Shown here one piece after another: positions 12,641-32,538 of a stretch of 64,000 nucleotides of DNA. Under the pieces are notes generated by a model that was not told the origin of the DNA, did not search any database, and was given only the letters and a program-made list of their open reading frames with translations. The translations under genes and the position numbers were made by a program. Each line of letters starts with the position of its first letter. The first letter of the stretch is position 1. Location of the stretch: sequence record NC_047880.1; one strand, written 5' to 3'.

Positions 12641-13411
12641 ATGAGCAATGTAGATAAAACAATGCCTCAAGGTAAGTGGGAATTCAACGAGCCTGTTGCT
12701 GCTGTGTTTGATAACATGCTGGCCAACTCTATTCCTTCTTATGACCGTATGCGTGACCTGACGTTTCGTCTGGGTAAACGTTTCGTAACACCAGGCTCAG
12801 CTATTGTTGATCTCGGTGCATCACTCGGTCGTGCTATCGAACCATTCTGTGAACACTTCGGTCCGTACATGTATCATCATGCAGCAGACCGTCCTGAACC
12901 TGATTCTGAAACAGGCAATCTCTATTCGCTGTATGAGACTGCTCCTGCAATGCGTGAGCGTCTCGCACAGAACGCAGTGTTGAACGCAGCCGAAGCGAAA
13001 CTCGAATCAGAATCGCTTGTGGACGTTGATACGTTCCGTTTCAGTGAGCAAGTCGAATGCTCTTTGATTCTCAGCGTGTTAACTTTGCAGTTCACTCCGA
13101 TTGAACACCGTCAGCACATTCTGGAAAAGGTCTATGACTCTTTGCAGTCTGGTGGTGCATTCATTCTCGTTGAGAAAGTTCTCGGGGATGATAATTATCT
13201 GGACAAGCTGCTGGTAGATACCTACTACAGCATGAAAGGTGATAACGGTTATTCACAAGAAAGCATTGCGACTAAGCGCAAGTCACTCGAAGGTGTTCTC
13301 GTTCCAGTGAAAGCCGCGTGGAATGAAGAACTGCTCCGTAAAGCGGGCTTCAATCGCGTCGAATGTTTCTATCGCGATCTCAACTTTGCAGGTTGGATTG
13401 CTGTTAAATAA
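12641..13411 (+). CDS. cmoA: CmoA-like carboxy-S-adenosylmethionine synthase
   Basis: WEFNEPVAAVFDNMLANSIPSY matches CmoA N-terminus [42 protein letters not shown] with Arg213 (codon 13277) aligning to E. coli catalytic R199. Confidence 0.85.
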   Translation: MSNVDKTMPQGKWEFNEPVAAVFDNMLANSIPSYDRMRDLTFRLGKRFVTPGSAIVDLGASLGRAIEPFCEHFGPYMYHHAADRPEPDSETGNLYSLYETAPAMRERLAQNAVLNAAEAKLESESLVDVDTFRFSEQVECSLILSVLTLQFTPIEHRQHILEKVYDSLQSGGAFILVEKVLGDDNYLDKLLVDTYYSMKGDNGYSQESIATKRKSLEGVLVPVKAAWNEELLRKAGFNRVECFYRDLNFAGWIAVK

Positions 13412-13412
13412 A

Positions 13413-13422
13413 TCTGTAAACA
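13413..13422 (+). promoter_or_regulatory. CTGTAAA(C)A motif
   Basis: Intergenic, before the RBS of 13437. Confidence 0.45.
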
Positions 13423-13436
13423 GTAGAGGTTAGAGC

Positions 13437-14309
13437 ATGAGTTCTACAGCGGCCATACGCGAGAAAGTTCGCTCGGCATTATTTGCGAGTCATAACAAGC
13501 CTGTCGATATGCGACAAGCGTTGATGGACACTTTGAGTTGGATTCCGAAAGAAGACCAAGTTACTGTGTTCATGTCGGGTGGCATTGATAGTCATGCTTG
13601 CTTGTTTGCTTGCATCGACCTAGGCCTCAAAGTTAACGTGCTGTCGTTCACACTCGACTCACACGAAAGCTCTGACTTCAAGGCAGCGAGACACGCAGCC
13701 GAAGTTTTCGACCTTGACTTCACGCCGATTGTTCTTCCAACGAACGAAGCCCATCTGAAAAGCTGGGTACGTTTCGCAGTACACAAGCTCGGGCTCACGA
13801 ACAAAAGTGAGATCGAATGTTCTTGGCCGCTGTACACCGCAATCCGTCATCTTGAAGGAAAGACCAAACATATCGTACTCGGTCTTGGCGGCGACTCGTA
13901 CTTCTTAATGGCAAAGAGCGCTTCGATGCACTGCAAAGACTTAGTGTTAGAGCAACGTCGAAAAGCTACGCGCCGTGTGCTGTCTCAGAACGTTCTCGTT
14001 AAGCGTGAAGCTTTTGCTCGTGGTATCTACGCGCATCTTCCGTACTTCGAGTTCGGTCGCACTTACGCAGAGCTGCAAATGGAAACCGACTTTAAAAAGA
14101 TCAACAGTCCGCAGAAGTCGTTTTACAATCAGGCATTCCCTGAGTATCGCAAGCGCTGTAAAGTACGCGGCCACCAAAACTTCCAGCTGGGTGACACTAA
14201 CATTAGCGGCATCTTTAGCGACGTGTTGTTGAAGTCCGACTGGAACACAAGAAACTTGAAAGCAATCGTTGGCGTATACAATGACGTTGCATCAGGAATC
14301 TGTAAATAG
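13437..14309 (+). CDS. PP-loop ATP pyrophosphatase, asparagine-synthetase C-terminal-like; probable amide ligase (CmoY-like)
   Basis: FMSGGIDS PP-loop; LGLGGDSYF resembles GEGADELF; no glutaminase domain; adjacent to cmoA. Confidence 0.75.
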   Translation: MSSTAAIREKVRSALFASHNKPVDMRQALMDTLSWIPKEDQVTVFMSGGIDSHACLFACIDLGLKVNVLSFTLDSHESSDFKAARHAAEVFDLDFTPIVLPTNEAHLKSWVRFAVHKLGLTNKSEIECSWPLYTAIRHLEGKTKHIVLGLGGDSYFLMAKSASMHCKDLVLEQRRKATRRVLSQNVLVKREAFARGIYAHLPYFEFGRTYAELQMETDFKKINSPQKSFYNQAFPEYRKRCKVRGHQNFQLGDTNISGIFSDVLLKSDWNTRNLKAIVGVYNDVASGICK

Positions 14310-14316
14310 TAATTTG
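14297..14316 (+). promoter_or_regulatory. overlapping CTGTAAATA and AGTAATTT motifs upstream of the DPA peptide
   Basis: AATCTGTAAATAGTAATTTG, 60 nt before ATG 14376. Confidence 0.55.
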
Positions 14317-14375
14317 AGTAAGCACTGATAATCAGTCTGCTCTTAACATAAACCCAAATCCTTAAGGAGCGCATC

Positions 14376-14525
14376 ATGCGTCATATCGACCCAGCAGTAC
14401 GTTTTAACGATCCAGCCATCACTGACCCAGCAGCCCGTTTCGATCCGGCCGACCCTGCTGATCCAGCAATCGGTTTTGATCCGGCTGACCCAGCAGATCC
14501 TGCTGACCCGGCTGCTCGCTTCTAA
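14376..14525 (+). CDS. 49-aa Asp-Pro-Ala repeat peptide (below ORF-track cutoff)
   Basis: MRHIDPAVRFNDPAITDPAARFDPADPADPAIGFDPADPADPADPAARF; AAGGAG RBS 14364-14369; synonymous codon variation across repeats; terminator downstream. Confidence 0.85.
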   Translation: MRHIDPAVRFNDPAITDPAARFDPADPADPAIGFDPADPADPADPAARF

Positions 14526-14541
14526 TAGCGAAACTTAATAC

Positions 14542-14570
14542 AAGGGGGCTGCTCATTGCAGTCCCTTTTT
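14542..14570 (+). terminator. Rho-independent terminator
   Basis: AAGGGGGCTGC-TCATT-GCAGTCCCTTTTT. Confidence 0.8.
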
Positions 14571-14593
14571 ACTTTCCTGTTGAGGAACGTGCT

Positions 14594-15232
14594 ATGTCTT
14601 TTGAGCTTGTAAACATTCTGCCGATACTGTCGCAATCAACTACAGTTCATCGTGCAGCCGACGGCACTGATGTTCACATCGTCCGAAACTTCTTCACACA
14701 TACGGAATGCGAAGCACTAATCGCTGAGGGCATTCAGTATCTCGAACCGAGCCGTGTTGGTGGACCGAACGATACAACTAAGATCGATAAAACAGTTCGC
14801 TCGTCCTCTACTGCGATGTTAAGCGAAGTATCTCAACACCCTGCTGTACTCGAAGCTATTCGTCGCATTGATGACGCATACGGTTACCCACATCTGTTCA
14901 GCAACCCGCTGCAACTCAATCGCTATCAAGTCGGTGAAGAGTTCGTAGCGCATCACGACTGGCATGACCCTGTTCGCCAGCATGATCGTATTCAACGTGA
15001 AGGCCAACGCACTTGGACCTTCTTGATGTACCTCAACGATGACTTCGAAGGCGGTCAGACTGAATTCCCGTTGATGGATCTCACAGTAACTCCTGAGCGC
15101 GGTATGCTTGTTCTGTGGAACAACTTGCTTGTTGACGGTTCAGTCAATGAGACAACGCTACACGCATCGAAGCCTGTAACGTCAGGTACGAAGTTCATGA
15201 TGACCAAATGGTTTAAGAACAAAGTGCTGTGA
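14594..15232 (+). CDS. 2OG-Fe(II) oxygenase, prolyl-4-hydroxylase-like
   Basis: LQLNRY-x-x-G-x-x-F-x-x-HHD (HxD), TFLMYLND-x-x-EGGQTEFP, LHASKPVTSGTKF; Lys as the 2OG ligand, as in P4Hs. Confidence 0.9.
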   Translation: MSFELVNILPILSQSTTVHRAADGTDVHIVRNFFTHTECEALIAEGIQYLEPSRVGGPNDTTKIDKTVRSSSTAMLSEVSQHPAVLEAIRRIDDAYGYPHLFSNPLQLNRYQVGEEFVAHHDWHDPVRQHDRIQREGQRTWTFLMYLNDDFEGGQTEFPLMDLTVTPERGMLVLWNNLLVDGSVNETTLHASKPVTSGTKFMMTKWFKNKVL

Positions 15233-15239
15233 TAATCTT

Positions 15240-15257
15240 GGGTAGCTAAGGCTGCCC
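15240..15257 (+). terminator. GGGTAGC-loop-GCTGCCC hairpin
   Basis: Member of recurrent hairpin family; weak U tract. Confidence 0.5.
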
Positions 15258-15283
15258 ATTGTCGTATCTAAGGTTCAGGAAAG

Positions 15284-15293
15284 TCTGTAAATA
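15284..15293 (+). promoter_or_regulatory. TCTGTAAATA motif
   Basis: Intergenic, 30 nt before ATG 15324. Confidence 0.55.
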
Positions 15294-15323
15294 CAGAATA
15301 AGATTCCTCTGAGGATAACTCAA

Positions 15324-15932
15324 ATGATAGTTCGTATTATTGACGGAGATATTGGTGCGACGTATGTTGCCGAGCAACTGCAAGCTGCTGGCATTGAATG
15401 TACAGTGCATTCACCAAACAATCCCCGTGCTCGTGCGCGTTATGCGCCTTATCCTTCTATGTCTATTAGTCTTGACCAGCTTCTTATCGAGCGTCACATC
15501 GGTGATGTACTCGGTACGTATCGCGGTATCTTCCTGATTAGTAGCTATGCAGGTTCTTTGATTGCAAACAGCATGATTGATCTTTGTGGTCAGTCCAACA
15601 ATATCATTACGTGTGATAAACTCGACTGCGGTAATGTTCCTGTTGCAGCCACCAAGCTTTCTGTAAATATCTATCAGAAGCAGCGCAAGCTGGCTCGCAT
15701 CGCTCGTCGTGTTCCGCACTATGAGTCCGACCATGAGTTTATCATTGCGGATAATACGGTTCAGGCTCTCTCGTATCCAGAGCTAGTACAGAAAGAAGAT
15801 ATCGAACTTAACAACAAGCCGAAGTTTCTTTCTAGTCCTTCGCTGATCGTTGCTGCAAAGCGTCTGGGTATTAAAAGCAACACGTACCATAACTATGCCG
15901 GCCTTGTGAAAGAGTTTCTCGCCGCGCGGTAA
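15324..15932 (+). CDS. hypothetical protein with degenerate Rossmann-like N-terminus
   Basis: VRIIDGDIGATYVAEQLQAAGIECTVH resembles a beta-alpha-beta dinucleotide fold; GAGGA RBS. Confidence 0.6.
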   Translation: MIVRIIDGDIGATYVAEQLQAAGIECTVHSPNNPRARARYAPYPSMSISLDQLLIERHIGDVLGTYRGIFLISSYAGSLIANSMIDLCGQSNNIITCDKLDCGNVPVAATKLSVNIYQKQRKLARIARRVPHYESDHEFIIADNTVQALSYPELVQKEDIELNNKPKFLSSPSLIVAAKRLGIKSNTYHNYAGLVKEFLAAR

Positions 15933-15942
15933 TGAGGATAAG

Positions 15943-16206
15943 ATGATTAATCGCTTCCAAATGAAAAAGACTCCGACACTTGATGCTTGTCAGTGGAACG
16001 GAGAGAACGTTGAAGAGATGGACAAATTTCTCAACGGTAACGGCTACGTTGTTGGTCGTTATGTGCAACTCGGTGTTCTTGATGATCACGGAGTACCGAC
16101 TATCGCTAACGTGTCTGTGGGTAACTATGCAGTGCGTCACGAAGACGGTACGGTTGAAGCAATGACAGCGACCGAACTGTTTGACAAATATGTATTGGCT
16201 GACTGA
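15943..16206 (+). CDS. conserved phage hypothetical protein
   Basis: K-x-P-x-L-DACQWNG-x-N...GNYAVR...F-x-x-Y pattern common in phages. Confidence 0.65.
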   Translation: MINRFQMKKTPTLDACQWNGENVEEMDKFLNGNGYVVGRYVQLGVLDDHGVPTIANVSVGNYAVRHEDGTVEAMTATELFDKYVLAD

Positions 16207-16211
16207 GGTAC

Positions 16212-16670
16212 ATGATGAACCTGTTTTCTATTCTGAAACAGCAAGTGAAGAAATCGCTGACGACAGAAGCAGCGCTCGAACCAGAAGTACGCGCACTGTT
16301 TGACTGGCGTTACTCTGTAGACGTCAAAGGTCAGATGTACATCATCGGTAAGACTGGCGCGAACACCTGCTTCTATATCGAACCGGGGACAGTTGAGCCT
16401 ACCGCATGTTATCCTGATGCGTTGCTGGCAAAAATTGACGAGTGGGGAACAGCGAAATATGTTTCCTACTCCGTGTTCTTCAAGCACTTCGATAGTCCTG
16501 TTGCAGAGAATATCAAGACGCTTGAGAAAGCACAGACGGGTAAGCCGAAGAAGTTTAAGAAGGGTTACTTCATCTGTGGTCTGACGCCGAAAGGCAAACG
16601 TGTGAAGTTGTTCAGACTGCAACAGGGTCTGAGCGGTATGCAATGGGTTGCAGTGGAGCCTAAGAAATAA
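16212..16670 (+). CDS. hypothetical protein
   Basis: GAGG RBS; basic C-terminus. Confidence 0.6.
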   Translation: MMNLFSILKQQVKKSLTTEAALEPEVRALFDWRYSVDVKGQMYIIGKTGANTCFYIEPGTVEPTACYPDALLAKIDEWGTAKYVSYSVFFKHFDSPVAENIKTLEKAQTGKPKKFKKGYFICGLTPKGKRVKLFRLQQGLSGMQWVAVEPKK

Positions 16671-16684
16671 TGTAGGAGAGTACG

Positions 16685-17183
16685 ATGAAACAACAACTGC
16701 TTGATCGTGGCTTCGACCACGAACGATATCATTGCTGGTTAAGTGAGACACAGATGACTGTGCCTCTATTCGGATTTGATCGTCAACTTCATGGCGTTCA
16801 AGTCTACACACCAGACGCACCGAAACAAACGTCGAATCCGAAAGATGCTCGTTACTTCACGCGCACGTTCGGTGGCAAGCAGTTGGTGTGGGGAACAGAA
16901 ATTGAACCTATACGGGTCGACCGTATTCTTAACTGAGTCCGTGTTCAAGGCATGTGCTGTTCATCGTCTTGGACTCAACGCTTGGTCTGTATTAGGTTCT
17001 AATGTCAACGATGCTCTGTACCTTCAACTGCGTCTGCTTGGCCTGAGATTTGTCTGTCTCGGTGATGCGGATAAAGCTGGTGAAGAGTTCAGTCAAACGT
17101 TTGGTCTTGGTGCAGTATCAAAAGACCTTGACGAAATGACTGACGCAGAGCTACTGGATTTAACTCGTCCTTTCTTGAGGTAA
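16685..17183 (+). pseudogene. Toprim-domain primase-like gene split by a frameshift near 16890-16901
   Basis: Frame A gives VPLFG...RYFT...LVWGTE; the +1 frame continues LNLYGSTVFLTESVFKA...GDADKAG...KDLDEM. Confidence 0.7.
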
Positions 17184-17185
17184 CT

Positions 17186-17608
17186 ATGGAACATAAAGTA
17201 AGAATCCGTATCATCGGACCTGTCGGTTGCGGCAAGTCAGAGGTGTACGTGCAATTGGTGAAAGCTCTCGCTATGACCAACGCGCGTGTTGTGCATCAAG
17301 ACCCTAAAGCTTGGGACCTGATTGCGCAGACTACAGGCAAAGATGCCTTCCAAGAGTTTCAATTCAATCCAGAAGTAACGATTGAAGAAGTCTGCATTCG
17401 CACCGACCCGAAAGCGTCACAGAATCCGATCATGCAGTTCTTTGCGTATGCGCATCTGCCTCCACATCTGCAAGGCGTTAGCCGTGAGATTGCGCTTCTC
17501 GCTCAGGAAATGGATCAGCGTCTGCCACAAGGACCTGAGAAATCTGCCGGTCTGCGTAAGTTGCTCGAAGCGAAAGACTGCTTAGTACGGTCGCTTGTAC
17601 GCGAATGA
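17186..17608 (+). CDS. two-part protein: N-terminal GxxGxGKS segment plus C-terminal helical hairpin resembling Acb2/Tad1-hairpin-type proteins
   Basis: GPVGCGKS; FFAYAHLPPHLQ...LPQGPEKSAGLRKLLEAKDCLVRS. Confidence 0.55.
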   Translation: MEHKVRIRIIGPVGCGKSEVYVQLVKALAMTNARVVHQDPKAWDLIAQTTGKDAFQEFQFNPEVTIEEVCIRTDPKASQNPIMQFFAYAHLPPHLQGVSREIALLAQEMDQRLPQGPEKSAGLRKLLEAKDCLVRSLVRE

Positions 17609-17997
17609 TCGTATCCGCAGACAACTGCCCTCCACTTAACGGCGCAGCGTATTGGGAACGCAGTCAAGATCCGTATCATGTTGATGCGTTCCCAAACGAA
17701 GAAGCTATCACAGGTCCTGGCATCGCAACAGGCATTCGTGCGTCTGGCTGGATGGCTATCGGCTGGCATGAAGACTGTCTCGCTTTTGTTGCGGACGGTT
17801 CTGAGTATGAAGATGATGGTATCGACTACATCCACTTCATAAGTTTTAATGGACATGAAGTGCGTATCCCTCGTGATGCACCATATCTGTCTGAACTTAT
17901 TCAGCGCCATATCAGCTACATCGAGGCTAAAGCTAAAGCCAAACCTCGTAGCGTTCTGTGTCTGCTGCGCTCAATCTTTTATCCTGTTCGAAACTAA
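17605..17997 (+). CDS. hypothetical protein
   Basis: ATGA overlap. Confidence 0.6.
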   Translation: MIVSADNCPPLNGAAYWERSQDPYHVDAFPNEEAITGPGIATGIRASGWMAIGWHEDCLAFVADGSEYEDDGIDYIHFISFNGHEVRIPRDAPYLSELIQRHISYIEAKAKAKPRSVLCLLRSIFYPVRN

Positions 17998-18006
17998 GGA
18001 ACTCCA

Positions 18007-18426
18007 ATGCGTCACACGCTTACGTGCAGTAAAGAAGGTGAAACAGAATATCGTATCACATCAGGTGCGGATTTCAGTTCACGCTATTCAAGCCCAGAAC
18101 TCTTGTTTGAAACTGCGCGTGAGCTTGGCATCGGTCTGACTGATCAAGAACAGAAATGGTTCCGTGAACTGTCTGATCGTTGCCTCGGTGATCTCTCTAT
18201 GGAGATTCAGAAGTTTGACACTGAGGAAGAGGTTGCAGATGAACTCAAAAACTTGACGCACAATCAAGGCTTTGAAATCTCTGAGGACGTGTACGATGAT
18301 TGCATTGCAGTAAAGTCTATCATCCACGTATTCGCTTTCACTGAAACGCAGAACGGCTTCTACGACTTCATTGCATCGACAACAACCGACGCCTTAGAAG
18401 CAGCGCATGGCTTCATCTTCGAGTAA
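18007..18426 (+). CDS. hypothetical protein
   Basis: AAGGA RBS. Confidence 0.6.
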   Translation: MRHTLTCSKEGETEYRITSGADFSSRYSSPELLFETARELGIGLTDQEQKWFRELSDRCLGDLSMEIQKFDTEEEVADELKNLTHNQGFEISEDVYDDCIAVKSIIHVFAFTETQNGFYDFIASTTTDALEAAHGFIFE

Positions 18427-18432
18427 CAATAC

Positions 18433-18455
18433 AGGGTGCCTTAGGGTGCCCTTTT
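18433..18455 (+). terminator. Rho-independent terminator
   Basis: AGGGTGCC-TTAG-GGTGCCCT-TTT with two G-U pairs. Confidence 0.65.
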
Positions 18456-18579
18456 CTGATCGTATACAACCAAAATAAGCCTAAAAGGACCGAGTAGAAT
18501 CATGCGTAAGGCGTATAAAACGATGCGTAGGCAGCGTAGAAACACCACCTTTTTCTTGAGCAGTGCATTGCGCTTGAAA

Positions 18580-18589
18580 TCTGTAAATA
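18580..18589 (+). promoter_or_regulatory. TCTGTAAATA motif upstream of dam
   Basis: Intergenic, immediately before AAGGAG RBS. Confidence 0.55.
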
Positions 18590-18607
18590 CTGATAAAGGA
18601 GAGATAA

Positions 18608-19450
18608 ATGACAGCAATAAGCCCAATCCGATATCAAGGAAATAAGCGCAGCCTAATACCCTTGATTTTAGAGAACGCTCCTTCTGTTAAGGACTGTTCT
18701 CGTTTCATTGATGCGTTCGGCGGTAGTGGTACTGTCTGCTTGAATATGCCTCAACCGTTTCGCGTGTACAACGAACTCAGTCCTCAGGTGTTTGAGATCG
18801 TCAAGATGCTGTCAGAGCAAGACCCGAAGAAAACTCTGTCACAGATTAAGCGTGTTGTGAAACACTGGGCGCTGACGAACAGTAGTGAGACGAGTTACGA
18901 CGACTTCCGTGTTCACGTCCAGAAGAAGCGTACCCCGTTACTGCATTATGTTGCGCACAGACACTCACACTCCAACATGCTACGCTTCAATCAGCAAGGC
19001 ATATACAATGTGCCGTTCGGTGCTCGTGGTCTGATTGGAAAGTTCGATGAACTTGAGCATGAGCTTGTGCAATTCCATGAGCGTATGCAGGGTGTGCATC
19101 TGACTAACCTGCGCTACAATGACTTGCTCGGTCGAGTGAATCACCAGCTTAACAGCAACACGTTCTGTTACTTCGACCCACCGTATCTGGCAAGTGGTGC
19201 AATGCAGTACGGAAAGTGGACTGAACGCAATGAGCGTAACCTGCTTTCGATGCTGGAACATCTAACTCGCCTTGGTGTTCCGTGGATGTTGAGCAACGTT
19301 GTCGAGCACAGACACTTCAAGAACGATTTGTTGAAACGTTGGTTGAAACGTTGTGCAACGACCGTACTCTATCCGAATAAAACATACGCACTGGCAAATG
19401 GTCAAGGCGGTTCACACGGTACTGTTGAAATTTTAGCAATGAACTACTAA
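18608..19450 (+). CDS. dam: DNA adenine N6-methyltransferase (Dam/D12 class)
   Basis: SPIRYQGNK, FIDAFGGSG (motif I), YNVPFG, YFDPPY (motif IV), MLSN. Confidence 0.9.
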   Translation: MTAISPIRYQGNKRSLIPLILENAPSVKDCSRFIDAFGGSGTVCLNMPQPFRVYNELSPQVFEIVKMLSEQDPKKTLSQIKRVVKHWALTNSSETSYDDFRVHVQKKRTPLLHYVAHRHSHSNMLRFNQQGIYNVPFGARGLIGKFDELEHELVQFHERMQGVHLTNLRYNDLLGRVNHQLNSNTFCYFDPPYLASGAMQYGKWTERNERNLLSMLEHLTRLGVPWMLSNVVEHRHFKNDLLKRWLKRCATTVLYPNKTYALANGQGGSHGTVEILAMNY

Positions 19451-19459
19451 GAGGTTGCT

Positions 19460-20170: not shown

Positions 20171-20177
20171 GGCGCTC

Positions 20178-21718: not shown

Positions 21719-22103
21719 CGACGATGCAGTCCGCAAAATGTATCAAGCCCGCAACCAACTCGTTGAACAGAAGATGCGAGAAATCTGGGCTATGCGTGGT
21801 TGGACTATTGATTGGGACTGGCATTGTGGATTTTGTGACGATGCCGAGTTCTTGTTTGATACTGAGGGCAAGCGTCTATATCCCATAGAAAACGGTATTC
21901 CTCATGAGACGTCAATCGCTACGTTGCTGGACAAGCATAAGCTGAATGTCACGTACATGAAGAAAACTGTAAAGATCATAAACAAGCAAGCTGATAACCC
22001 TGTTACGGGGTCTGGTGATTGCATTTATATGGCATACATCAATTGGCTACTAGCTTTCGAAAAGCAGAAATTTGAGGAGAAGAATAAGTGCGCTGCGAAT
22101 TAA
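21687..22103 (+). CDS. hypothetical protein
   Basis: AAGGA RBS. Confidence 0.55.
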   Translation: MYQKLDTKKPDDDAVRKMYQARNQLVEQKMREIWAMRGWTIDWDWHCGFCDDAEFLFDTEGKRLYPIENGIPHETSIATLLDKHKLNVTYMKKTVKIINKQADNPVTGSGDCIYMAYINWLLAFEKQKFEEKNKCAAN

Positions 22104-22606
22104 CCGAACTGCCTATCGCTGTCGATCAAGCAGAAGCAATCATGGCCAGCGTGTTTGCTTTGGCGGTTGCTTCTAAATCAAAACGGCGTGCTACTGCTGC
22201 AATGATGATTCAATTCATTGACGGCTTTCCGATGATCAAAAGCAGCGGCGTTAACGGTACTGTGCCGGGTTCGTCAAACGTTTGTGAAACACCAGACCTG
22301 CTGACAACGCTGCCTCATGTTATTCATGCGGAAGCGAACTGCCTCGACCGTCTGAATGACTACAACTCTCTGGTGACTGACCAAGACATTCTGTTTTGTA
22401 CAGACAGTCCGTGTCCAGATTGTTTGCGTCAACTGACAGACGAAGGCGTTAAGACCGTTGTGTATGCGCGTGAGTATCGCCTGACTGATCATCTCGACGC
22501 TTCTGATATTCGCATGTTCTGCCTCGATCTGAAAGCTGTTGAACAGCGCATGATTCGCAGCATCGAACGTATGTCGGAAGTTATCTCTGCAACACCGAGT
22601 GTCTAA
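22088..22606 (+). CDS. dCMP deaminase-like (cytidine deaminase fold)
   Basis: SSGVNGT, HAEANCL, SPCPDC zinc motifs. Confidence 0.85.
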   Translation: MRCELTELPIAVDQAEAIMASVFALAVASKSKRRATAAMMIQFIDGFPMIKSSGVNGTVPGSSNVCETPDLLTTLPHVIHAEANCLDRLNDYNSLVTDQDILFCTDSPCPDCLRQLTDEGVKTVVYAREYRLTDHLDASDIRMFCLDLKAVEQRMIRSIERMSEVISATPSV

Positions 22607-25706: not shown

Positions 25707-26013
25707 TGCCTTTAAGTACATCATGTGTGTATTGAAGGGAAGTAACCGTGAGAACGTAGATGTGTATCTGCCTATCATCTTCCCTCAGCATATCATGCAC
25801 AGTGATATGAAGGACTGCATGAAGCAATACTCCATGAGTAGTGGCTATCGTGATAACAAATACGATCAGCATATCGAATTCGTATCTGCGGGTTTCATTT
25901 CAATGGACATGCAGACGTGCTTCGGCGAATCTGAATCAATGAGCTTGAAGTCTCGACCAGAAGACGCAGAGATCATTCGAACATGGAATCAAAATCATGG
26001 AAAAGTTTCTTGA
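25693..26013 (+). CDS. hypothetical protein
   Basis: Packed ORF. Confidence 0.55.
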   Translation: MKMYDAFKYIMCVLKGSNRENVDVYLPIIFPQHIMHSDMKDCMKQYSMSSGYRDNKYDQHIEFVSAGFISMDMQTCFGESESMSLKSRPEDAEIIRTWNQNHGKVS

Positions 26014-26332
26014 GCTACTGAGCACTTTCTTTGACTCTCCAGCCAGTGCATTCGTCGTGCCTTTCGTTGTGATCAGCTATTTCATCATTGAGCACAAATA
26101 CGAGAAGCGGACGTTACGTCAGTCCCGCGCTGTGTTTGCTAACGGCTGGGATCCTGCGAAAGGTACAGAGTATAAACACAAGTGGTGGCCGGGTAGACGT
26201 TGCAGCATGTGCTACACGTCGAACAGCCCGAACGATAAGTTTGTGCCGAGTGTAGTGATCAACATCGCTGGCGTCGGTGTGCGTGAGATGAATGCTAACA
26301 AATTCCGTTCACGCTATAAGGAGATCGTATGA
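25997..26332 (+). CDS. hypothetical membrane-anchored protein
   Basis: Hydrophobic AFVVPFVVISYFII. Confidence 0.55.
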   Translation: MEKFLELLSTFFDSPASAFVVPFVVISYFIIEHKYEKRTLRQSRAVFANGWDPAKGTEYKHKWWPGRRCSMCYTSNSPNDKFVPSVVINIAGVGVREMNANKFRSRYKEIV

Positions 26333-26634
26333 TTCCTTATGTGTATCTCGAACAGTCAACAATCGAAACAATGAAGTCTGTATTCGGTTGTGACAAACCT
26401 TTCGTCGTTGCCAGCACGATGAACATTGCTGGGCATAAAGGTGATCGTGTTTACTTCTCTAACGGAGCTAACACTGTCATCGTTCCTCGTCTGCAAGGCT
26501 TCTCTATTGGTCAGGTCTACTATATCGCACTCGATAACAATGTGTACGAGTGGAAAGCAGGCACTGAATACGATCAACCTCAAGTAACAGATAATGCCGT
26601 AGTACAGGCTTATCGCATCACACCTATTCGTTAA
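26329..26634 (+). CDS. hypothetical protein
   Basis: ATGA overlap, AAGGAG RBS. Confidence 0.6.
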   Translation: MIPYVYLEQSTIETMKSVFGCDKPFVVASTMNIAGHKGDRVYFSNGANTVIVPRLQGFSIGQVYYIALDNNVYEWKAGTEYDQPQVTDNAVVQAYRITPIR

Positions 26635-26645
26635 CAGGACTAACA

Positions 26646-27746
26646 ATGTCAAAACAAATGCTTGACCTCCGCAACCCTCAGGACTTTGCTTTCTTTAACA
26701 TGCACAGTGCTGATGGCCAGTACATCTCTGTGTGTGACACTATCCTGCGTGAAGGTACGCTTGAGTGGGATGCAGCACGTACAGACGATCAGTGGCAGAC
26801 AATCATCGGTGTGGGTATGCAGTTGGTCAACACGCTGATCGCTTTCCCTGCGTTGCTGTCTGCGCGTAAGAACTGGGTAGCAGCCGTTGATGAAATGTGC
26901 TGGATGGCTCGCGGCGAAACGAATATCAAAACCCTGGGCTCTAAAATCTGGGACGAGTGGGCTGACGAAAACGGCGAGTGTGGTCCAATCTACGGTGAAA
27001 TGTGGCGACGTTGGCCTGATGTGAAAGCGTTTTTCGATGCAGCTGGTGCTTTACCTGCATTGTGGTCTCCTGATCATATTCGCAATCAAGCGGAAATCTC
27101 GCGTATGCGTGAAGACGGATATCTCGAAACTCCTATGTCCGACGGTCGCATTCTGTTTGAAGGTCAGATTGACCAGTTCGCTAACGCACTCGAATACATC
27201 ATGGCGCGCTCTCGCTCTCGTCGTATTCGCGTTCAGGGATTCAACCCGTCTTATGTGAACATGCAGGGTCTGCCTCCGTGTCACACAGAGTTTGAATTCA
27301 ACGTTACTCAGGCGACTGATTACGAAACCGCACAAATGAACTGGCGTGGGTTCGCACCTCAGAAAGACAGTCTGCATATCACTGTGCAATTACGTTCTAA
27401 CGACTGCCTACTCGGGCGCCCCTTCAACATCATGGGCTACAGCGCCATGCACCAGTTGATTGCTAAGTGGGCTGGTCTGAACGTCGGTAGCTTCACGTTG
27501 AACTCGACGAACACTCACATCTATACTCACCACGTTGAAGCGTATAAAAAGCAGCGTGAGCAATACGTCGAACTCGAAACGCAGATGAAAGAGACAGGCA
27601 ATCCGATTCAATATCCGTTGCTGGAAATCTCTGATGAAGTGCTTGGTCTGACTGCAAAAGAACTTCTCGATAACGTGAACATCGACTGGTTCCAGCTTCT
27701 CGACTATTCCCCTAAACCTGCTGTTCGTGGACGGGTGACTAAATGA
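26646..27746 (+). CDS. thyA: thymidylate synthase
   Basis: IWDEWA, GPIYGEMWR, SRRI, GLPPCH, RSNDCLLGRPFN, HIYTHH. Confidence 0.92.
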   Translation: MSKQMLDLRNPQDFAFFNMHSADGQYISVCDTILREGTLEWDAARTDDQWQTIIGVGMQLVNTLIAFPALLSARKNWVAAVDEMCWMARGETNIKTLGSKIWDEWADENGECGPIYGEMWRRWPDVKAFFDAAGALPALWSPDHIRNQAEISRMREDGYLETPMSDGRILFEGQIDQFANALEYIMARSRSRRIRVQGFNPSYVNMQGLPPCHTEFEFNVTQATDYETAQMNWRGFAPQKDSLHITVQLRSNDCLLGRPFNIMGYSAMHQLIAKWAGLNVGSFTLNSTNTHIYTHHVEAYKKQREQYVELETQMKETGNPIQYPLLEISDEVLGLTAKELLDNVNIDWFQLLDYSPKPAVRGRVTK

Positions 27747-28390
27747 AAAACTTCATGCTGATCAAACGTATCAGCTCTTACCTGTATCTGGGCTTTGCAG
27801 AAAACATCCCTGACATACCTCGTCGCGGTGTTGAGAAGTTCGAAGTGCTAATTCCTGACGGCCGCGAGGGTGAGAACGAACCTATCCTCCAAATGACCGC
27901 GCGTTGTATCTATCATCTGCCGCATAACTGCTTCCTGATCAGCATTGCAGAAGGTACCGAAGGACACGAGCACCCTCCGATGATGAAGTCTCACTGCAAG
28001 TACAACATGGAACTGTTCCTGCGTTCTGACCATGGGCGTGAGATGATCGCAGTTAAGCAGATTCTGGATGAATTGCATGATGCAGAAGTGCAGCATCCTC
28101 AATGGCCAGAAGAGGCGATTCATGCTGCGTCAATCGTCACGGAAGAGGCTGGTGAGCTGCTGCGTGACTGTGCTACCTTCGAAGAAAACGGCGACCAGCG
28201 TCTGATTGTCAACATGCTCGGTGAAGCCACGCAGGTAGGCGCAATGGCAGTTCGCTTTATGAAGAACTTGCCTACTTCCCAACGTCGTACTATCCCTAAC
28301 AATGCGCTACGCTCAATCCTGGACTCTGACATGACTCCAGAGCAACAACTGATTGAAGTACGTCGCCTGATGAATGACGGAGTTCAGTAA
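27743..28390 (+). CDS. protein with C-terminal MazG-like (all-alpha NTP pyrophosphohydrolase) domain
   Basis: IVTEEAGELLRD...EATQVGAMAVRF. Confidence 0.55.
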   Translation: MKNFMLIKRISSYLYLGFAENIPDIPRRGVEKFEVLIPDGREGENEPILQMTARCIYHLPHNCFLISIAEGTEGHEHPPMMKSHCKYNMELFLRSDHGREMIAVKQILDELHDAEVQHPQWPEEAIHAASIVTEEAGELLRDCATFEENGDQRLIVNMLGEATQVGAMAVRFMKNLPTSQRRTIPNNALRSILDSDMTPEQQLIEVRRLMNDGVQ

Positions 28391-29271
28391 TGCGTTTACT
28401 CTCATACATCCCAGCTGCAACGACTGGCGTATTCCGTACGTTGCGTGTTCTCGACCTCGGACTTGAACCGAGTAGCGTTGAAGAACTGAAATTGTTCAAC
28501 TGCGTCTTTAATAATGTTGAAATCGTTAGCACCGAAGTGCCAGGCGTCTCCGACATTCTTATCCGTGATGCGTATAGCTGGCGTGTCGACCCTCACTTCA
28601 TTCGTCTCGATGCTGAGTACAGTTACTGGTGTGGTAAGCATACGCCTTCCATTGAGCAGATGCTTGATGCGCATATCATGAAAGGTCATGTGCCGGATTT
28701 GATCGCGGACTTCGACCAATTCATTGCGTGGCTCAAAGCAGAACTGGCGAAGCTGCCTCGTGTTGCTACAGACGACCTAAAGTTCGCAGGCTCTGAGATG
28801 AAGCACGGCAATAACCGTTACGACTTGTGGTTGTTGTTCAAACACTATCTGATGCTTGACGGTCAGATGACTCTCACGCACAGTCCTGAAAACGATATCG
28901 GCGTTAGTGACCTGTTCATCTCTGATAAGGGTGTGCGCTGGTGGTTGGTTGAGCACAACAAAACGCTGATGGGCATTGCACATTCATCTAACATGCTGGC
29001 TGCGTATATCACGTTTGATACTCGTCGCGGTGCACACTATTCGTTTGTGTATGATGATGGCCAGACAGTTGTACGCCACGTCGATGAATCAGAATTCATG
29101 CACATGGCCGTTCACGGACAATTCCCGAAAGTATCTATCACTGAGTCGGACACTGTGTACGATCTCAACTTTGACTTCGCCGAGTTCTTCACTGAGAAGT
29201 ATCACAAGTACAACAACCACGTATTCATTGGCGGTCACAGTGAAGCTCGCGACCTTGTGCGCTTCATCTGA
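28390..29271 (+). CDS. hypothetical protein
   Basis: TAATG coupling. Confidence 0.6.
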   Translation: MRLLSYIPAATTGVFRTLRVLDLGLEPSSVEELKLFNCVFNNVEIVSTEVPGVSDILIRDAYSWRVDPHFIRLDAEYSYWCGKHTPSIEQMLDAHIMKGHVPDLIADFDQFIAWLKAELAKLPRVATDDLKFAGSEMKHGNNRYDLWLLFKHYLMLDGQMTLTHSPENDIGVSDLFISDKGVRWWLVEHNKTLMGIAHSSNMLAAYITFDTRRGAHYSFVYDDGQTVVRHVDESEFMHMAVHGQFPKVSITESDTVYDLNFDFAEFFTEKYHKYNNHVFIGGHSEARDLVRFI

Positions 29272-29289
29272 CGGCTAGGCCTCTTGTAC

Positions 29290-29297
29290 AGTAATTT
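29290..29297 (+). promoter_or_regulatory. AGTAATTT motif
   Basis: Intergenic, before AGGAGG RBS. Confidence 0.5.
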
Positions 29298-29320
29298 AAT
29301 CTAACCAAACAGGAGGCCGT

Positions 29321-29656
29321 ATGAATTACGACAAAGCAAAAGATTTTAAACCGTTCAAGTATCTCTCACCTCCTTCTGAGGCACCAGTGCGAGGCTTCTA
29401 TGGTACTGTCACTCGTTTGCGCACACTGGACGTTAACATAAACGAAGATACAGCCGAGTTCGTCTTTACTAGGGAAGAGTTAGACTCAATGGATCGAGGA
29501 ACACTGACGTTTCGCGCTAAGGACAGCGGAAGCTCTATCGCAATCAAGAAATGCTCTGTGTCTGGTTTGAAAATGGTAATTACGCTTGAACGAAGAGTGT
29601 TGAACTTCGGTAAAGTCCAAGTCGAGTGGAAGAACGTCGTCCACTATGAATGGTAA
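29321..29656 (+). CDS. hypothetical protein
   Basis: AGGAGG RBS. Confidence 0.65.
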   Translation: MNYDKAKDFKPFKYLSPPSEAPVRGFYGTVTRLRTLDVNINEDTAEFVFTREELDSMDRGTLTFRAKDSGSSIAIKKCSVSGLKMVITLERRVLNFGKVQVEWKNVVHYEW

Positions 29657-29658
29657 TA

Positions 29659-29668
29659 ACTGTAAATA
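29659..29668 (+). promoter_or_regulatory. CTGTAAATA motif upstream of ParB-like and C5-MTase genes
   Basis: Intergenic. Confidence 0.55.
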
Positions 29669-29702
29669 CAGAGCATTCAGTAACTCATAAAGAGAATGTA
29701 CA

Positions 29703-30407
29703 ATGGCAAAAATTGCTAAAGCAAAAGCAAAGGACGGGAAAAAGAAAGGCGCTATGGCTATTGATTTGAAATCTTTCAAGTCGGCTAAACAGCTTAAAGG
29801 CGCTAAGTACAATCCACGTTTCATTACAGACAGTCGCTTGAGCGCACTCGAAAGTTCGTTGGGTAGCTTCGGTGACTTGTCTGGCATCGTGTTTAACAAC
29901 AGCGTCAGTTCAGGCGTTCTTATCTCCGGTCACCAGCGTCTCAAGTCCATCAACGATTGGGAAACGCGCATCGAACTCCAGCCTACTTCTGACAAGTACG
30001 GTACAGTCGCTTTGGGTTACGTTCATGCAACGCATCCGAAGTCGAGCAAGACGATTAGCATTCCTCTGCGTATCGTAAACTGGAACGATAAGAAAGCCGA
30101 GTACGCTGCGAACATTGCTGCGAATGCGCACGGCGGTGAGTTCGATAACAAGAAGCTTGCGAATCTGGTTGAGAAACTTGACCTGACTTCAATCAAGCCT
30201 CAACTGCTCGGACTCGACCCGCTGGAAATCCGTGGTCTGCAACAGAAGCTGAAATCACAAGCACTTGTTGAAGGCGAGAAACGCGCAGGCAAAACTACTG
30301 GTCAGATGAACGGTAGTACGGGCGCATTCAAAGAATACACACCAGATGAAGTCGGCGATAAGCTGTCATGCACCTGCCCACGCTGTGGATTTAAGTTCGA
30401 GGGATAA
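29703..30407 (+). CDS. ParB/sulfiredoxin-like N-terminal domain protein with C-terminal Zn ribbon
   Basis: KYNPR...SFG...IVFN...LISGHQRL; ends CTCPRCGFKF. Confidence 0.8.
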   Translation: MAKIAKAKAKDGKKKGAMAIDLKSFKSAKQLKGAKYNPRFITDSRLSALESSLGSFGDLSGIVFNNSVSSGVLISGHQRLKSINDWETRIELQPTSDKYGTVALGYVHATHPKSSKTISIPLRIVNWNDKKAEYAANIAANAHGGEFDNKKLANLVEKLDLTSIKPQLLGLDPLEIRGLQQKLKSQALVEGEKRAGKTTGQMNGSTGAFKEYTPDEVGDKLSCTCPRCGFKFEG

Positions 30408-30408
30408 T

Positions 30409-32538
30409 ATGATCATCAAGCCGCCTACAATGAAAGAGATCAACGCGCAAGACAACAAGTGGCGTGGCATGAGCTTCTTCGCAGGCTGTGGTGGTTCTTC
30501 TACCGGTCTCAAATGGGCCGGTATTAACATCATCTTGAGTAATGAGTTCGTAGACGTGGCGCGTGAGTCTTATCAAGCGAACCACCCATCTACGTTAGTT
30601 CTCCCTCACGATATCCGTCGTCTCGACCCGAAGAAGATTATGCAGCACTTCGGGATGGGTAAGGGTGAACTTGATTTCCTCGATGGTAGCCCACCATGCT
30701 TCACTGAGAACACTCTGATTCACACTGCTGAGGGGATGAAGTTCATCTCTGATGTTAATGTCGGCGACATGGCAATGACTTCTGTTGGTCGTTATCATGA
30801 AGTGTACGATACTATGGTGCGTCCTTATGTTGGTACGATGCACAAGATCGAAACACTGCTCGGCTCGAACAACGCAACGCCTGAGCATCCGTTCTTCATT
30901 CGCCGCGTTCAACCTACTGGCTTGTGGTCTGAACCGTTCTGGTGTGATGCGAAAGATGTACAAGAAGGTGATTTACTCTCAACACCTCGAACAACTCCAG
31001 ACATGGGCGCTGACGCTTATCATGGTCAAATGTCATTGCTGACGCCTGTCATTCAGAGCTGGGTAACTTACCCTGAGTTCTGGTGGGCTATCGGTCATTG
31101 GTGTGCGCACGGTACACTTGAAGTTGTGCAGGGTGTCGATGTTGTTAGCTTCGAATCACACACAGCTCAGGAAAACGATCTGATTGAGCAGGTGTTTGAT
31201 GTTCTGAAAATCAGTAGCATCAACAGCGTAGACACAACCGTTGATCAGCGCAAGACCTATCGCGTTGTCATGGATTCAGAACTGTTCGCGTTCCTGAGCA
31301 AGTTCGTGGCACAGGGTAAGAACAACCTGTCTCGTCGTCTGCCGTCGATGATCTTCCACTTAGCTACTGAACTGAAACAGCAATTTATTCTCGGCTATCT
31401 CGGTCGTGACTACGTTAGTGCAATGGGCATGAGCCAGTTAATCAGCACAGACAACCGTCGCTTCCTCGCTGAGATGAATTACCTGACGTGCTCTGCATTC
31501 AACAGACCTCTGTTCGATGGTATGTTGTTCTCTGATGTGAACTACGGTTCAGCGCTTACGCCTCGTGATCGTAATCAGAAGAAAGAACATGTTGGTTATC
31601 TGCTGCTGCAAGATGAAAACAATTTCTTCTACGAGTTTAACGATAACGATCCACATCTGTGGGTTCAAGTGATCGAGAACCTCGCGTATCAGACAACCTG
31701 TGACGTGTACAACTTCTCAGTCAGTGAAGACGAGACGTATGTGGCGAACAGCATTGTCGTGCATAACTGCAAAGGCTTCTCGACGGCTGGCGTGAAAGAA
31801 GAAGGTTGGGGTAAAGAAGTCAAGTACAGCGAGAACAAGAAACAGCAGGTTGATGACCTGTTCGATCAGTATTGCCGTATGATCAGTGGCTTCCAGCCTA
31901 AAGTGTTCACAGCGGAAAACGTCAGTGGTCTTGTGAAGGGATCTTCTAAAGGTTACTTCCTTGAGATCATGAAAACGTTTGACGAGCTGGGCTACTATGT
32001 CAAAGCACCGTTGATTAACAGTGCATGGCTTGGTGTTCCACAGTCGCGTGAACGTATCATCTTCATGGGTGTGCGCAAAGACGTTGCACATGCGTTGGGT
32101 TATCGCTCAATCGGTACTGCTGTGCCTGCTGTCGTGCCTGCTTCTAGCATGGCTGTGCTTGCTGATGCTCTGCCTAACATTCTGCGATACAAATCGGCTG
32201 AGAAAGATATCATTAAGTATAAGCCCGCGATGAACGGACCTATGCCTACGATAACTGCTGCTGATGCGATTGCGTATGAGACGGCACGATTCTCTTCTGC
32301 TGGGTTTATCGAAGACAACAAGGGCATTCGTCGTAAGCTTACGATTGATGAACTGAAAGTTGTTTCCGGTCTACCTGCTGATTACAAGCTGGTCGGTAAG
32401 TTCGAACAACAGTGGGAACGTCTCGGTCGTATCTGCGTACCTCACATGACTCATGCTGCTGCGACTGCGTTGATCAATCATATTCTTGTGCCTTACGCCA
32501 AGAAGAAGAAACAGAAACCGGGCGCTCTCTTCCGTTAG
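30409..32538 (+). CDS. C5-cytosine DNA methyltransferase homologue with intein; probable carboxymethyltransferase (CmoX-like)
   Basis: FFAGCGG (I), GSPP|C (IV), AENVSG (VI), QSRERIIF (VIII), motif X reads LGRICVP in place of GN(A/S)VP. Confidence 0.85.
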   Translation: MIIKPPTMKEINAQDNKWRGMSFFAGCGGSSTGLKWAGINIILSNEFVDVARESYQANHPSTLVLPHDIRRLDPKKIMQHFGMGKGELDFLDGSPPCFTENTLIHTAEGMKFISDVNVGDMAMTSVGRYHEVYDTMVRPYVGTMHKIETLLGSNNATPEHPFFIRRVQPTGLWSEPFWCDAKDVQEGDLLSTPRTTPDMGADAYHGQMSLLTPVIQSWVTYPEFWWAIGHWCAHGTLEVVQGVDVVSFESHTAQENDLIEQVFDVLKISSINSVDTTVDQRKTYRVVMDSELFAFLSKFVAQGKNNLSRRLPSMIFHLATELKQQFILGYLGRDYVSAMGMSQLISTDNRRFLAEMNYLTCSAFNRPLFDGMLFSDVNYGSALTPRDRNQKKEHVGYLLLQDENNFFYEFNDNDPHLWVQVIENLAYQTTCDVYNFSVSEDETYVANSIVVHNCKGFSTAGVKEEGWGKEVKYSENKKQQVDDLFDQYCRMISGFQPKVFTAENVSGLVKGSSKGYFLEIMKTFDELGYYVKAPLINSAWLGVPQSRERIIFMGVRKDVAHALGYRSIGTAVPAVVPASSMAVLADALPNILRYKSAEKDIIKYKPAMNGPMPTITAADAIAYETARFSSAGFIEDNKGIRRKLTIDELKVVSGLPADYKLVGKFEQQWERLGRICVPHMTHAAATALINHILVPYAKKKKQKPGALFR
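30697..31767 (+). mobile_element. 357-aa intein inserted at the catalytic Pro-Cys; degenerate LAGLIDADG blocks
   Basis: Starts CFTENTLI; ATPEHPF block B; ends VYNFSV...IVVHN then Cys +1; WAIGHWCAHG and FILGYLGRD are decayed endonuclease motifs. Confidence 0.9.

Follow-up and report, generated by a model that had tools for sequence, protein, structure and literature searches.

The 64,000-nucleotide stretch of sequence record NC_047880.1 analyzed here (the window) corresponds to bases 1-64000 of Erwinia phage vB_EamM_Y3 (KY984068.1; 100% identity, coordinates unchanged), a 261-kb jumbo myovirus with an enterobacterial host. On its + strand, it carries homologues of three enzymes that together can modify DNA cytosines with a carboxymethyl group and then extend this group: CmoA (Y3_017), a CmoY-like ligase (Y3_018), and, in a second locus, the C5 DNA methyltransferase homologue CmoX (Y3_050). 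A proline-repeat micro-open reading frame (micro-ORF, Y3_019) and a prolyl 4-hydroxylase homologue (P4H, Y3_020) follow the ligase, while a ParB-like gene (Y3_049) precedes CmoX. The GenBank labels are ‘carboxy-S-adenosyl-L-methionine synthase’ for Y3_017, ‘asparagine synthase’ for Y3_018, and ‘DNA-cytosine methyltransferase’ for Y3_050, and the three genes are not connected with one another in the GenBank record or in the papers mentioning Y3. The loci used for comparison, from phages and from metagenomic jumbo-phage contigs (L014, L015, L018, L019, L021, and others), were read individually, and the phage collection searched contained 50,697 records.

These enzymes have a precedent in the Synechococcus phage S-B43, where CmoA makes carboxy-S-adenosyl-L-methionine (Cx-SAM) and CmoX uses it to write 5-carboxymethylcytosine at GC sites (PMC12783734). 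CmoY then ligates glycine to the 5-carboxymethylcytosine, and R350 of CmoX is essential (Yang et al., Nat Commun 2025, PMC12783734). In thousands of phage contigs, CmoX is accompanied by CmoA, by ligases belonging to several clusters, and by proteins with a ParB domain (PMC12783734). As this pathway was already described in December 2025 (PMC12783734), the three-enzyme core of Y3 belongs to a published pathway and is not itself novel. ‘Erwinia’, ‘intein’, and ‘oxygenase’ each have 0 occurrences in the main text of that paper, and its supplementary text lists neither Erwinia phages nor glycine-pocket residues. What is new in Y3 is the split architecture, the intein located at the catalytic Cys and, above all, the conserved cassette formed by the ligase, the proline-repeat micro-ORF, and the P4H.

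The pathway enzymes and the arrangement of their genes

Y3_017 (12641..13411, + strand; 256 aa) is, on the basis of profile and PDB matches, a predicted carboxy-SAM synthase, which would convert S-adenosyl-L-methionine (SAM) and prephenate into Cx-SAM. It is matched by the CmoA family TIGR00740 with an E-value of 2.4e-41 and 142 bits (equivalog cut-off of 193.3, not reached), by PRK15451 with 105 bits (cut-off of 285, not reached), and by phrog_4752 at E 4e-82. Among solved structures, it comes closest to E. coli CmoA (4gek, E 5.7e-29) and H. influenzae YecO (1im8). Its R213 is aligned to chain residue R213 of 4gek, which is the native E. coli R199, known to form a salt bridge with the Cx-SAM carboxylate (PMC3663124). 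The comparison was extended to a set of E. coli CmoA contacts (Y39, D62, G64, S66, A70, D89, N90, D117, N132, F137, and E164): Y34, D57, G59, S61, A65, F151, and E178 of Y3_017 are identical in E. coli and in six phage or metagenomic homologues, and D130 is also identical to an E. coli contact residue in the pairwise alignment.

Prephenate, the co-substrate of CmoA, is the product of chorismate mutase, and genes for such an enzyme (CM_2) lie within or near the clusters of two metagenomic relatives, between CmoX and CmoA in one (L015:8718-9161) and 7 kb from the cluster in the other (L019:1135-1428). A phage CM_2 gene could raise the prephenate supply for Cx-SAM synthesis, and these neighbors may be taken as indirect support for Cx-SAM production from SAM and prephenate. 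The L015 protein has no match in the phage collection, and the two candidates considered, Y3_016 and PaBG_00179 from Pseudomonas phage PaBG, show no similarity to it. Since no chorismate mutase was identified in Y3, this phage presumably draws on host prephenate.

The ligase gene Y3_018 (13437..14309, + strand; 290 aa) lies directly 3' of CmoA, as it also does in Yoloswag, L015, and L021, while in L014, L018, and L019 the ligase start overlaps the stop codon of the CmoX-like gene. The protein is a predicted CmoY-like ATP-dependent amide ligase, consisting of an AsnB-type synthetase domain only, with a PP-loop SGGIDS at residues 47-52 and without a glutaminase domain. Although profile matches to Asn_synthase and QueC are weak (Pfam Asn_synthase E 2.9e-5), tblastn aligns it with the S-B43 CmoY (SpCmoY) at 27% identity (E 4e-14, 89% of the query covered), and a family profile built from 18 homologues aligns with SpCmoY with an hhalign probability of 99.4% (E 5e-22, 242 columns). 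The AlphaFold2 model (predicted local distance difference test, pLDDT, of 90) has beta-lactam synthetase, AsnB, and carbapenam synthetase as its top Foldseek matches, and superposes on their synthetase domains over about 280 of its 290 residues (TMq 0.59-0.68). The ligases of L018 (8001-8966) and L019 (8001-8957) carry a strongly basic extension at the N-terminus, rich in Lys/Arg and about 30-40 residues long, which is absent from Y3_018 and is compatible with DNA binding.

Y3_050 (30409-32538, + strand; annotated as a 709-aa protein) belongs to the C5 DNA methyltransferases (PF00145, E 8e-38) and has an intein inserted in it. A start at 30346, giving a 730-aa ORF, was rejected, since the relatives all begin with MIIKPP, which places the true start at 30409. 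The N-extein (30409..30696; 96 aa) covers positions 3-70 of PF00145, with motif I FAGCGGSS and residues F24, E46, F47, and D68, and it ends with GSPP; the C-extein (31768..32538; 256 aa) starts with the catalytic Cys and contains motifs VI (ENV), VIII (QSRER), and X (QQWERLGR). The PF00145 match breaks off at profile position 70 in the N-extein and is taken up again at position 71 in the C-extein, the junctions reading GSPP-intein-CKGFS. By far the best PDB match of the C-extein is the S-B43 CmoX (SpCmoX, 8yf3), with an E-value of 7.4e-33 versus 1.4e-9 for HaeIII and 5e-7 for HhaI. All the SpCmoX residues named as Cx-SAM contacts or as catalytic (PMC12783734), F25, E47, F48, D69, C98, and R350, are kept in Y3 as F24, E46, F47, D68, C454, and R674. 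The last of these, the motif-X Arg (R695 in the 730-aa ORF, R221 of the C-extein), is invariant in eight orthologues and occupies the position of Asn304 in M.HhaI. Wild-type SpCmoX takes Cx-SAM only, and its R350N variant is inactive (PMC12783734).

The intein itself (30697..31767, + strand; 357 aa) was delimited by profile matches and orthologue comparison. It begins with Cys1 (CFTENTL...), contains a block B ATPEH (TxxH), and ends with VVHN, directly followed by the Cys of the C-extein. It matches the Intein_splicing profile at E 4e-8, with 33.6 bits versus a cut-off of 35.8, and the intein C-terminus family TIGR01443 with 26.7 bits, over the cut-off of 15.6. AD1, Yoloswag, and fHe-Yen9-02 have an intein at this site as well; the splicing residues are kept in the four phages, and divergence in the remainder of the intein is faster than in the exteins. 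PaBG, S-B43, L015, and the other metagenomic orthologues are devoid of it and show an uninterrupted GSPP-CKSFS. Pfam and PDB sequence searches gave no LAGLIDADG or HNH family match, and no PDB match at all, for the central ~200 aa. As one and the same Cys serves catalysis and acts as the +1 nucleophile of the intein, the unspliced CmoX precursor cannot be active. An intein located right ahead of a DNA-modifying enzyme's catalytic Cys also constitutes a good case for asking if activity is gated by splicing.

The stop codon of the ParB-like gene Y3_049 (29703..30407, + strand) abuts the CmoX start codon. Its product is 47% identical to the ParB-like nuclease PaBG_00176, found at the same position in PaBG, and matches phrog_620 (ParB-like) at E 1.6e-32. 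Six other loci have a ParB-like homologue (44-48% identity) on the upstream side of the CmoX-like gene, in most cases right next to it, and an association between ParBc domains and CmoX has been reported (PMC12783734).

An initial annotation, made from the sequence alone, had pointed to a CmoA homologue with R213 equivalent to E. coli R199, a PP-loop ligase adjoining it, and a C5 methyltransferase homologue with an Arg in motif X. Each element was found where that annotation had placed it, and the 4gek alignment, the SGGIDS loop, and the equivalence of R674 with SpCmoX R350 bear out these assignments. The distance between the genes, previously given as 17 kb, was measured at 17.8 kb between the CmoA and CmoX starts, and 16.1 kb separate the ligase end from the CmoX start.

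In PaBG, S-B43, and the metagenomic contigs L014, L015, L018, L019, and L021, the CmoA, ligase, and CmoX genes are contiguous, L015 for example showing the order methyltransferase, chorismate mutase, CmoA, ligase, micro-ORF, P4H. Judging from this gene order, the two Y3 loci would have arisen by the secondary splitting of a cluster whose genes relatives keep together. The three genes co-occur in the same 48 Erwinia, two Dickeya, and one Yersinia phage records, plus PaBG, and the colinear Dickeya phage JA11 is devoid of CmoA, the ligase, the ParB-like gene, and CmoX, all four (PMC6143709 Table 5).

The genes located 3' of CmoA vary among these phages. Y3 and Yoloswag have the ligase, the micro-ORF, and the P4H; AD1 (L005:1671-3588) and L017 (6977-8888) have a DUF1611 protein (Rossmann and P-loop) followed by a different AsnB-like ligase, without P4H and without micro-ORF; and the PaBG ligase is flanked by other small hypothetical genes. 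The Y3 ligase is 89% identical to that of Yoloswag and only about 30% identical, over the N-terminal part, to that of AD1, a closer relative of Y3. Conversely, the Y3 CmoA is 86% identical to that of AD1 and 70% to that of Yoloswag, and CmoX is likewise closer to AD1. The ligase being closer to Yoloswag while CmoA and CmoX are closer to AD1, the comparison suggests that the decorating module, i.e., the ligase cassette, is exchanged as a unit. From the DUF1611 cassette, it seems that AD1 and Alexandra-type phages append another group.

The proline-repeat micro-ORF and the prolyl 4-hydroxylase

The micro-ORF Y3_019 (14376..14525, + strand), preceded by an AAGGAG ribosome-binding site, encodes a 49-aa peptide made of ten Asp-Pro-Ala (DPA) units, which is a candidate P4H substrate as well as a candidate peptide donor. 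Ten of the 15 DPA tripeptides present in the six-frame translation of the window fall in this peptide, and the ten units differ from one another by synonymous changes only, which argues for selection on the peptide. Directly 3' of the micro-ORF, an intrinsic-terminator-like hairpin (14542..14576, + strand; 11-bp stem with 6 GC pairs, followed by a T run) was the sole stand-out of the promoter and terminator scans performed around both loci, and similar hairpins are present 3' of the micro-ORF in Yoloswag, L014, L015, L018, L019, and L021.

Next to it, Y3_020 (14594..15232, + strand) encodes a 2-oxoglutarate (2OG)-Fe(II) oxygenase homologous to peptidyl prolyl 4-hydroxylases (PF13640, E 1.6e-15). 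Its PDB sequence matches are all P4Hs (9/9), the best being that of Bacillus anthracis (3itq, 1.4e-23), and the others including human C-P4H alpha2 and the Chlamydomonas and PBCV-1 enzymes. The iron ligands H120-x-D122...H190 and the 2OG-binding K200 are invariant in five orthologues.

This arrangement is not restricted to Y3. Proline-repeat micro-ORFs occupy the equivalent slot of seven other loci, with (DPA)n, (DPE..)n, (NPEI)n, (APEI)n, or (NPE[R])n repeats, the common denominator of which is a Pro with a neighboring acidic residue. All eight loci with a P4H have a ribosome-binding site, a proline-repeat micro-ORF, and a terminator between the ligase and the P4H, whereas none of the five loci without P4H has this arrangement. 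The order ligase, micro-ORF, P4H is unchanged in these 8/8 loci, although the phage backbones differ and ligase identity falls to as little as 55%.

There is already a known case of a viral P4H with proline repeats encoded by the virus as its substrate: the PBCV-1 enzyme hydroxylates Pro-Ala-Pro-Lys repeats, with a preference for Pro before Ala (PMC3634087). Y3_020 shares with the P4Hs of B. anthracis (3ITQ) and PBCV-1 (5C5T) the fold family, the HxD...H motif, and the 2OG-binding Lys. It differs from them in that it is embedded in a DNA-modification cluster, and in that its candidate substrate is a stand-alone repeat peptide of 22-56 aa (over the loci compared), rather than a structural protein.

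Proposed pathway and competing explanations

The catalytic and cofactor-binding features of the pathway enzymes are intact by sequence, and Y3 probably hypermodifies its own DNA cytosines via the CmoA/CmoX/CmoY route. Y3_017 would turn SAM and host prephenate into carboxy-SAM, as its homology and conserved Cx-SAM contacts indicate. The Y3_050 precursor would splice out its intein, thereby joining GSPP to the catalytic Cys, and the mature CmoX, probably together with the ParB-like Y3_049, would carboxymethylate cytosine C5 in duplex DNA, the motif-X Arg holding the donor carboxylate, to yield 5-carboxymethylcytosine. Y3_018 would then adenylate the carboxylate of this base and couple it to an amine, giving an amide. 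The likely benefit for the phage is the shielding of its DNA from host nucleases. The initial annotation had mentioned a cyanophage CmoA/CmoX/CmoY system, which is confirmed (PMC12783734). It had also proposed that this phage writes 5-carboxymethylcytosine and derivatizes it further, with the genes linked by shared promoter-like motifs; Cx-SAM-dependent cytosine carboxymethylation with a subsequent ATP-dependent amidation is strongly supported by sequence, structure-based, and comparative evidence, while the motif-based linkage is not specific.

The likeness with S-B43 includes the same three enzyme families, the lack of CmoB, a glutaminase-less AsnB-type ligase homologous over its full length, a CmoX that keeps SPPC, the Cx-SAM Arg, and all the named cofactor contacts (39% identity over the exteins), and the association with a ParB-domain protein noted in PMC12783734. 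The differences are that the Y3 genes lie in two loci 16 kb apart while those of S-B43 are adjacent, that the Y3 CmoX has a 357-aa intein at the catalytic Cys, that the Y3 ligase, 27% identical, belongs to a subfamily always followed by a proline-repeat micro-ORF and a P4H homologue, and that Y3 is a jumbo myovirus of an enterobacterium. PaBG (PaBG_00176-00181), a Pseudomonas phage of the same lineage as Y3 (PMC7412058), shows 47% identity to Y3 for the ParB-like protein, 47% for CmoX, 42% (tblastn) to 49% (alignment) for CmoA, and 35-37% for the ligase, but its cluster is contiguous and contains no intein, no P4H, and no micro-ORF. With the E. coli CmoA/CmoB system for the tRNA modification uridine 5-oxyacetic acid (cmo5U), Y3 shares the Cx-SAM synthase family and the conserved Arg199 salt-bridge residue; nevertheless, it is devoid of CmoB, and the predicted acceptor is the C5 of DNA cytosine and not the 5-hydroxyuridine of tRNA (ho5U34). 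Finally, the Y3 CmoX shares with the engineered carboxymethyltransferase M.MpeI N374K a basic residue in place of the motif-X Asn, a change that lets a C5 methyltransferase use Cx-SAM (as cited in PMC12783734), while the Y3 enzyme is natural, has an Arg and not a Lys, and is predicted to be Cx-SAM-specific.

Several observations weigh against this route. Y3_017, although clearly homologous to CmoA, remains below the NCBI equivalog cut-off (142 versus 193.3 bits), and it departs from E. coli CmoA at three or four Cx-SAM contacts (D89E, N90T, N132V, and I118T, the latter being a main-chain contact). The D89E, N90T, and N132V differences (an E and S-[VI] pattern) are common to all the phage homologues examined, and the biochemically active CmoA of S-B43 (SpCmoA) is still more distant, with 28% identity to Y3_017. 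The ligase is just 27% identical to the single characterized CmoY, the CmoA/ligase and CmoX loci are 16 kb apart, and the promoter-like motif CTGTAAATA, described below, is absent from the 50-nt spacer before CmoA. Furthermore, CmoX needs splicing, which is predicted only from the conserved C1, TxxH, HN, and C+1 residues.

The amine coupled by the ligase is less clear. The micro-ORF, the P4H, the ParB-like partner, and the placement of the intein suggest that the further derivatization in Y3 is not the cyanophage glycine amide, and the 27% ligase identity, together with the different accessory genes, argues for an amine other than glycine. Y3_020 could hydroxylate the Pro residues of the Asp-Pro-Ala repeat peptide Y3_019, and the hydroxylated peptide, or a fragment of it, could supply the amine or be itself conjugated to DNA. 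The amine ligated in Y3 would then derive from, or be, a hydroxyproline-containing repeat peptide, in a DNA hypermodification resembling the pathways of peptides that are made on ribosomes and modified after translation (RiPPs). This peptide step is a tentative proposal, and somewhat doubtful. There is no protease in the cluster, and the sole free amine of the Y3_019 peptide is its N-terminus. In addition, the micro-ORF and the P4H could form a separate module merely accompanying the ligase. Contig L020 presents RecA, ligase, micro-ORF, and P4H, and neither CmoA nor CmoX lies within 6 kb of them. The two are likewise not seen beside the ligase and P4H in the record of Salmonella phage Sen-NF (PV359490.1), where the ligase and P4H genes (77% and 63% identical to those of Y3, respectively) stand side by side next to RecA, as in L020. 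CmoA, CmoX, and ParB were not found in bases 1-100,000 of this record, the last 8.5 kb being annotated as tail or virion genes. However, its 95 coding sequences run end to end with almost no intergenic DNA, so that it resembles concatenated coding sequences rather than a native genome, and the absence of CmoA, CmoX, and ParB from it is unreliable.

A possible alternative, itself short of an even chance, keeps the same route but has the ligase use a small amine in free form, be it glycine, a different amino acid, or ammonia, with the micro-ORF and the P4H being functionally separate and merely syntenic, for example producing a hydroxyproline-rich acidic peptide with an anti-defense or structural role. 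SpCmoY indeed uses free glycine (PMC12783734), the Y3 ligase aligns with it along its whole length, and a promoter-like motif and a terminator are dedicated to the micro-ORF. This sits less well with the conservation of the ligase/micro-ORF/P4H order in all eight loci, down to 55% ligase identity and on different backbones, and with a ligase cassette that appears to swap as a unit (89% ligase identity with Yoloswag versus ~30% with AD1). It is unlikely that the ligase, micro-ORF, and P4H instead constitute a RiPP-like module, with the ligase acting on the Asp/Glu carboxylates of the peptide and not on DNA, through amidation or isopeptide formation as by lasso-peptide cyclases, the Y3 DNA modification ending at 5-carboxymethylcytosine. 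AsnB homologues do act on peptide carboxylates in RiPP pathways, an acidic residue stands beside Pro in every repeat unit (DPA, DPE, NPE, APE), and the L020 arrangement without CmoA or CmoX within 6 kb is in line with such a module. Yet the ligase is homologous, along its full length, to an enzyme with demonstrated action on 5-carboxymethylcytosine in DNA, and its gene either overlaps the stop of the CmoX-like gene (L014, L018, L019) or directly follows CmoA (Y3, Yoloswag, L015, L021).

The genes might also be unrelated, with an ordinary SAM-dependent, Dcm-like methyltransferase making 5-methylcytosine, and a CmoA either boosting the cmo5U content of host tRNA via the host CmoB or draining SAM as an anti-defense. 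The GenBank/RefSeq names (‘DNA-cytosine methyltransferase’ and ‘tRNA methyltransferase’) would agree with this, and SAM depletion by CmoA has been raised as a possibility (PMC12783734). It is nonetheless very improbable, considering that the motif-X Asn of SAM-dependent C5 methyltransferases is replaced by Arg, that CmoX is by far the closest solved structure (E 7e-33 versus 1e-9), and that the presence or absence of CmoX tracks that of CmoA and the ligase perfectly. The tRNA route lacks its second enzyme in the phage: tblastn with E. coli CmoB found no match in the whole Y3 record, which extends the absence from the window noted in the initial annotation, nor in any real phage record of the collection, where the single match is a bacterial-looking 3.4-kb fragment also carrying cmoA. 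The window contains no tRNA gene, and enterobacterial hosts already have a CmoA (E. coli cmoA-cmoB).

If the core route via CmoA, CmoX, and the CmoY-like ligase operates in Y3, 5-carboxymethylcytosine chemistry would reach beyond cyanophages to a large clade of jumbo phages that infect Erwinia, Dickeya, Yersinia, and Pseudomonas. Such phages are under development for fire-blight biocontrol, and DNA hypermodification in them bears on host range, evasion of restriction and CRISPR systems, sequencing artefacts, and cloning. Cassette swapping downstream of a conserved CmoA points to a diversification, module by module, of the groups added at the carboxyl handle, possibly including a peptide-derived DNA adduct, no case of which turned up in the literature searched. 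Should the peptide reading hold, the intein would additionally make CmoX activity depend on protein splicing.

Promoter-like motif and neighboring genes

The motif CTGTAAATA occurs in 10 copies on the + strand of the window and in none on the - strand, versus 0.37 expected. The exact matches start at 7820, 10452, 14300, 15285, 15661, 18581, 29660, 34954, 38682, and 43006, often extend to aaTCTGTAAATAyAG, and for the most part lie 23-91 nt 5' of start codons. One copy (14300..14308, + strand) is located inside the 3' end of the ligase gene, 76 nt upstream of the micro-ORF, and an exact copy of CTGTAAATACAG (29660..29671, + strand) stands 43 nt upstream of the ParB-like/CmoX operon. The motif also precedes Dam, Y3_008, 013, 021, 056, and 063. 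Among relatives, it is found before the micro-ORF in Yoloswag, where L014 and L021 have the close variants CTGTAAAGA and CTGTAAAGT, and upstream of genes in L015, a metagenomic relative. The motif probably represents a phage-specific promoter. A sigma-70-like protein is encoded by these phages (seen beside the cluster in L015), and a scan with the sigma-70 consensus around both loci gave no promoter-like matches above the shuffled expectation. The shared promoter-like motif by which the initial annotation had linked the two loci is real, but as a specific link between CmoA and CmoX it was rejected: it is a general + strand element that serves at least 10 transcription units and has no copy ahead of CmoA, so that the linkage of the loci rests on comparative evidence instead.

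The CmoA/ligase locus belongs to a block of eight genes (Y3_016-Y3_023, 12201-16670), located between a membrane protein gene and a small ‘primase’ gene and missing from JA11 by annotation. Beyond CmoA, the ligase, the micro-ORF, and the P4H, it contains four proteins without a family match. One of them, Y3_021 (15324-15932), was considered as a pathway member and set aside, as it has no family match and allows no conclusion; it is 61% identical to AD1_019 and 32% to a fHe-Yen9-02 protein, both of which occupy the same position. Outside the window, KY984068.1 encodes a radical-SAM protein annotated as MoaA-like (217933-219276, L013:12934-14277), which is presumably the ‘radical SAM superfamily protein’ listed as Y3_272, in the paper's own numbering, in PMC6143709 Table 5. 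Alongside CmoA, the ligase, the ParB-like gene, and CmoX, it is the fifth gene in that table that Y3 and AD1 have in common and JA11 lacks (PMC6143709 Table 5), and, although 200 kb away, it is a possible further pathway member.

Other nucleotide- and DNA-related genes of the window comprise a ThyA-family protein (26646-27746; 366 aa) with a full thymidylate-synthase profile and about 100 extra residues, a dCMP-deaminase-like protein (22088-22606), and a Dam-type N6-adenine methyltransferase (18608-19450). As the three are also found in JA11, they are not tied to the CmoX system. GenBank further annotates a macro-domain O-acetyl-ADP-ribose deacetylase (Y3_013, 10498-11082) and a GTP pyrophosphokinase-like protein (Y3_066, 39577-40257), which are potential host-takeover or counter-defense genes.

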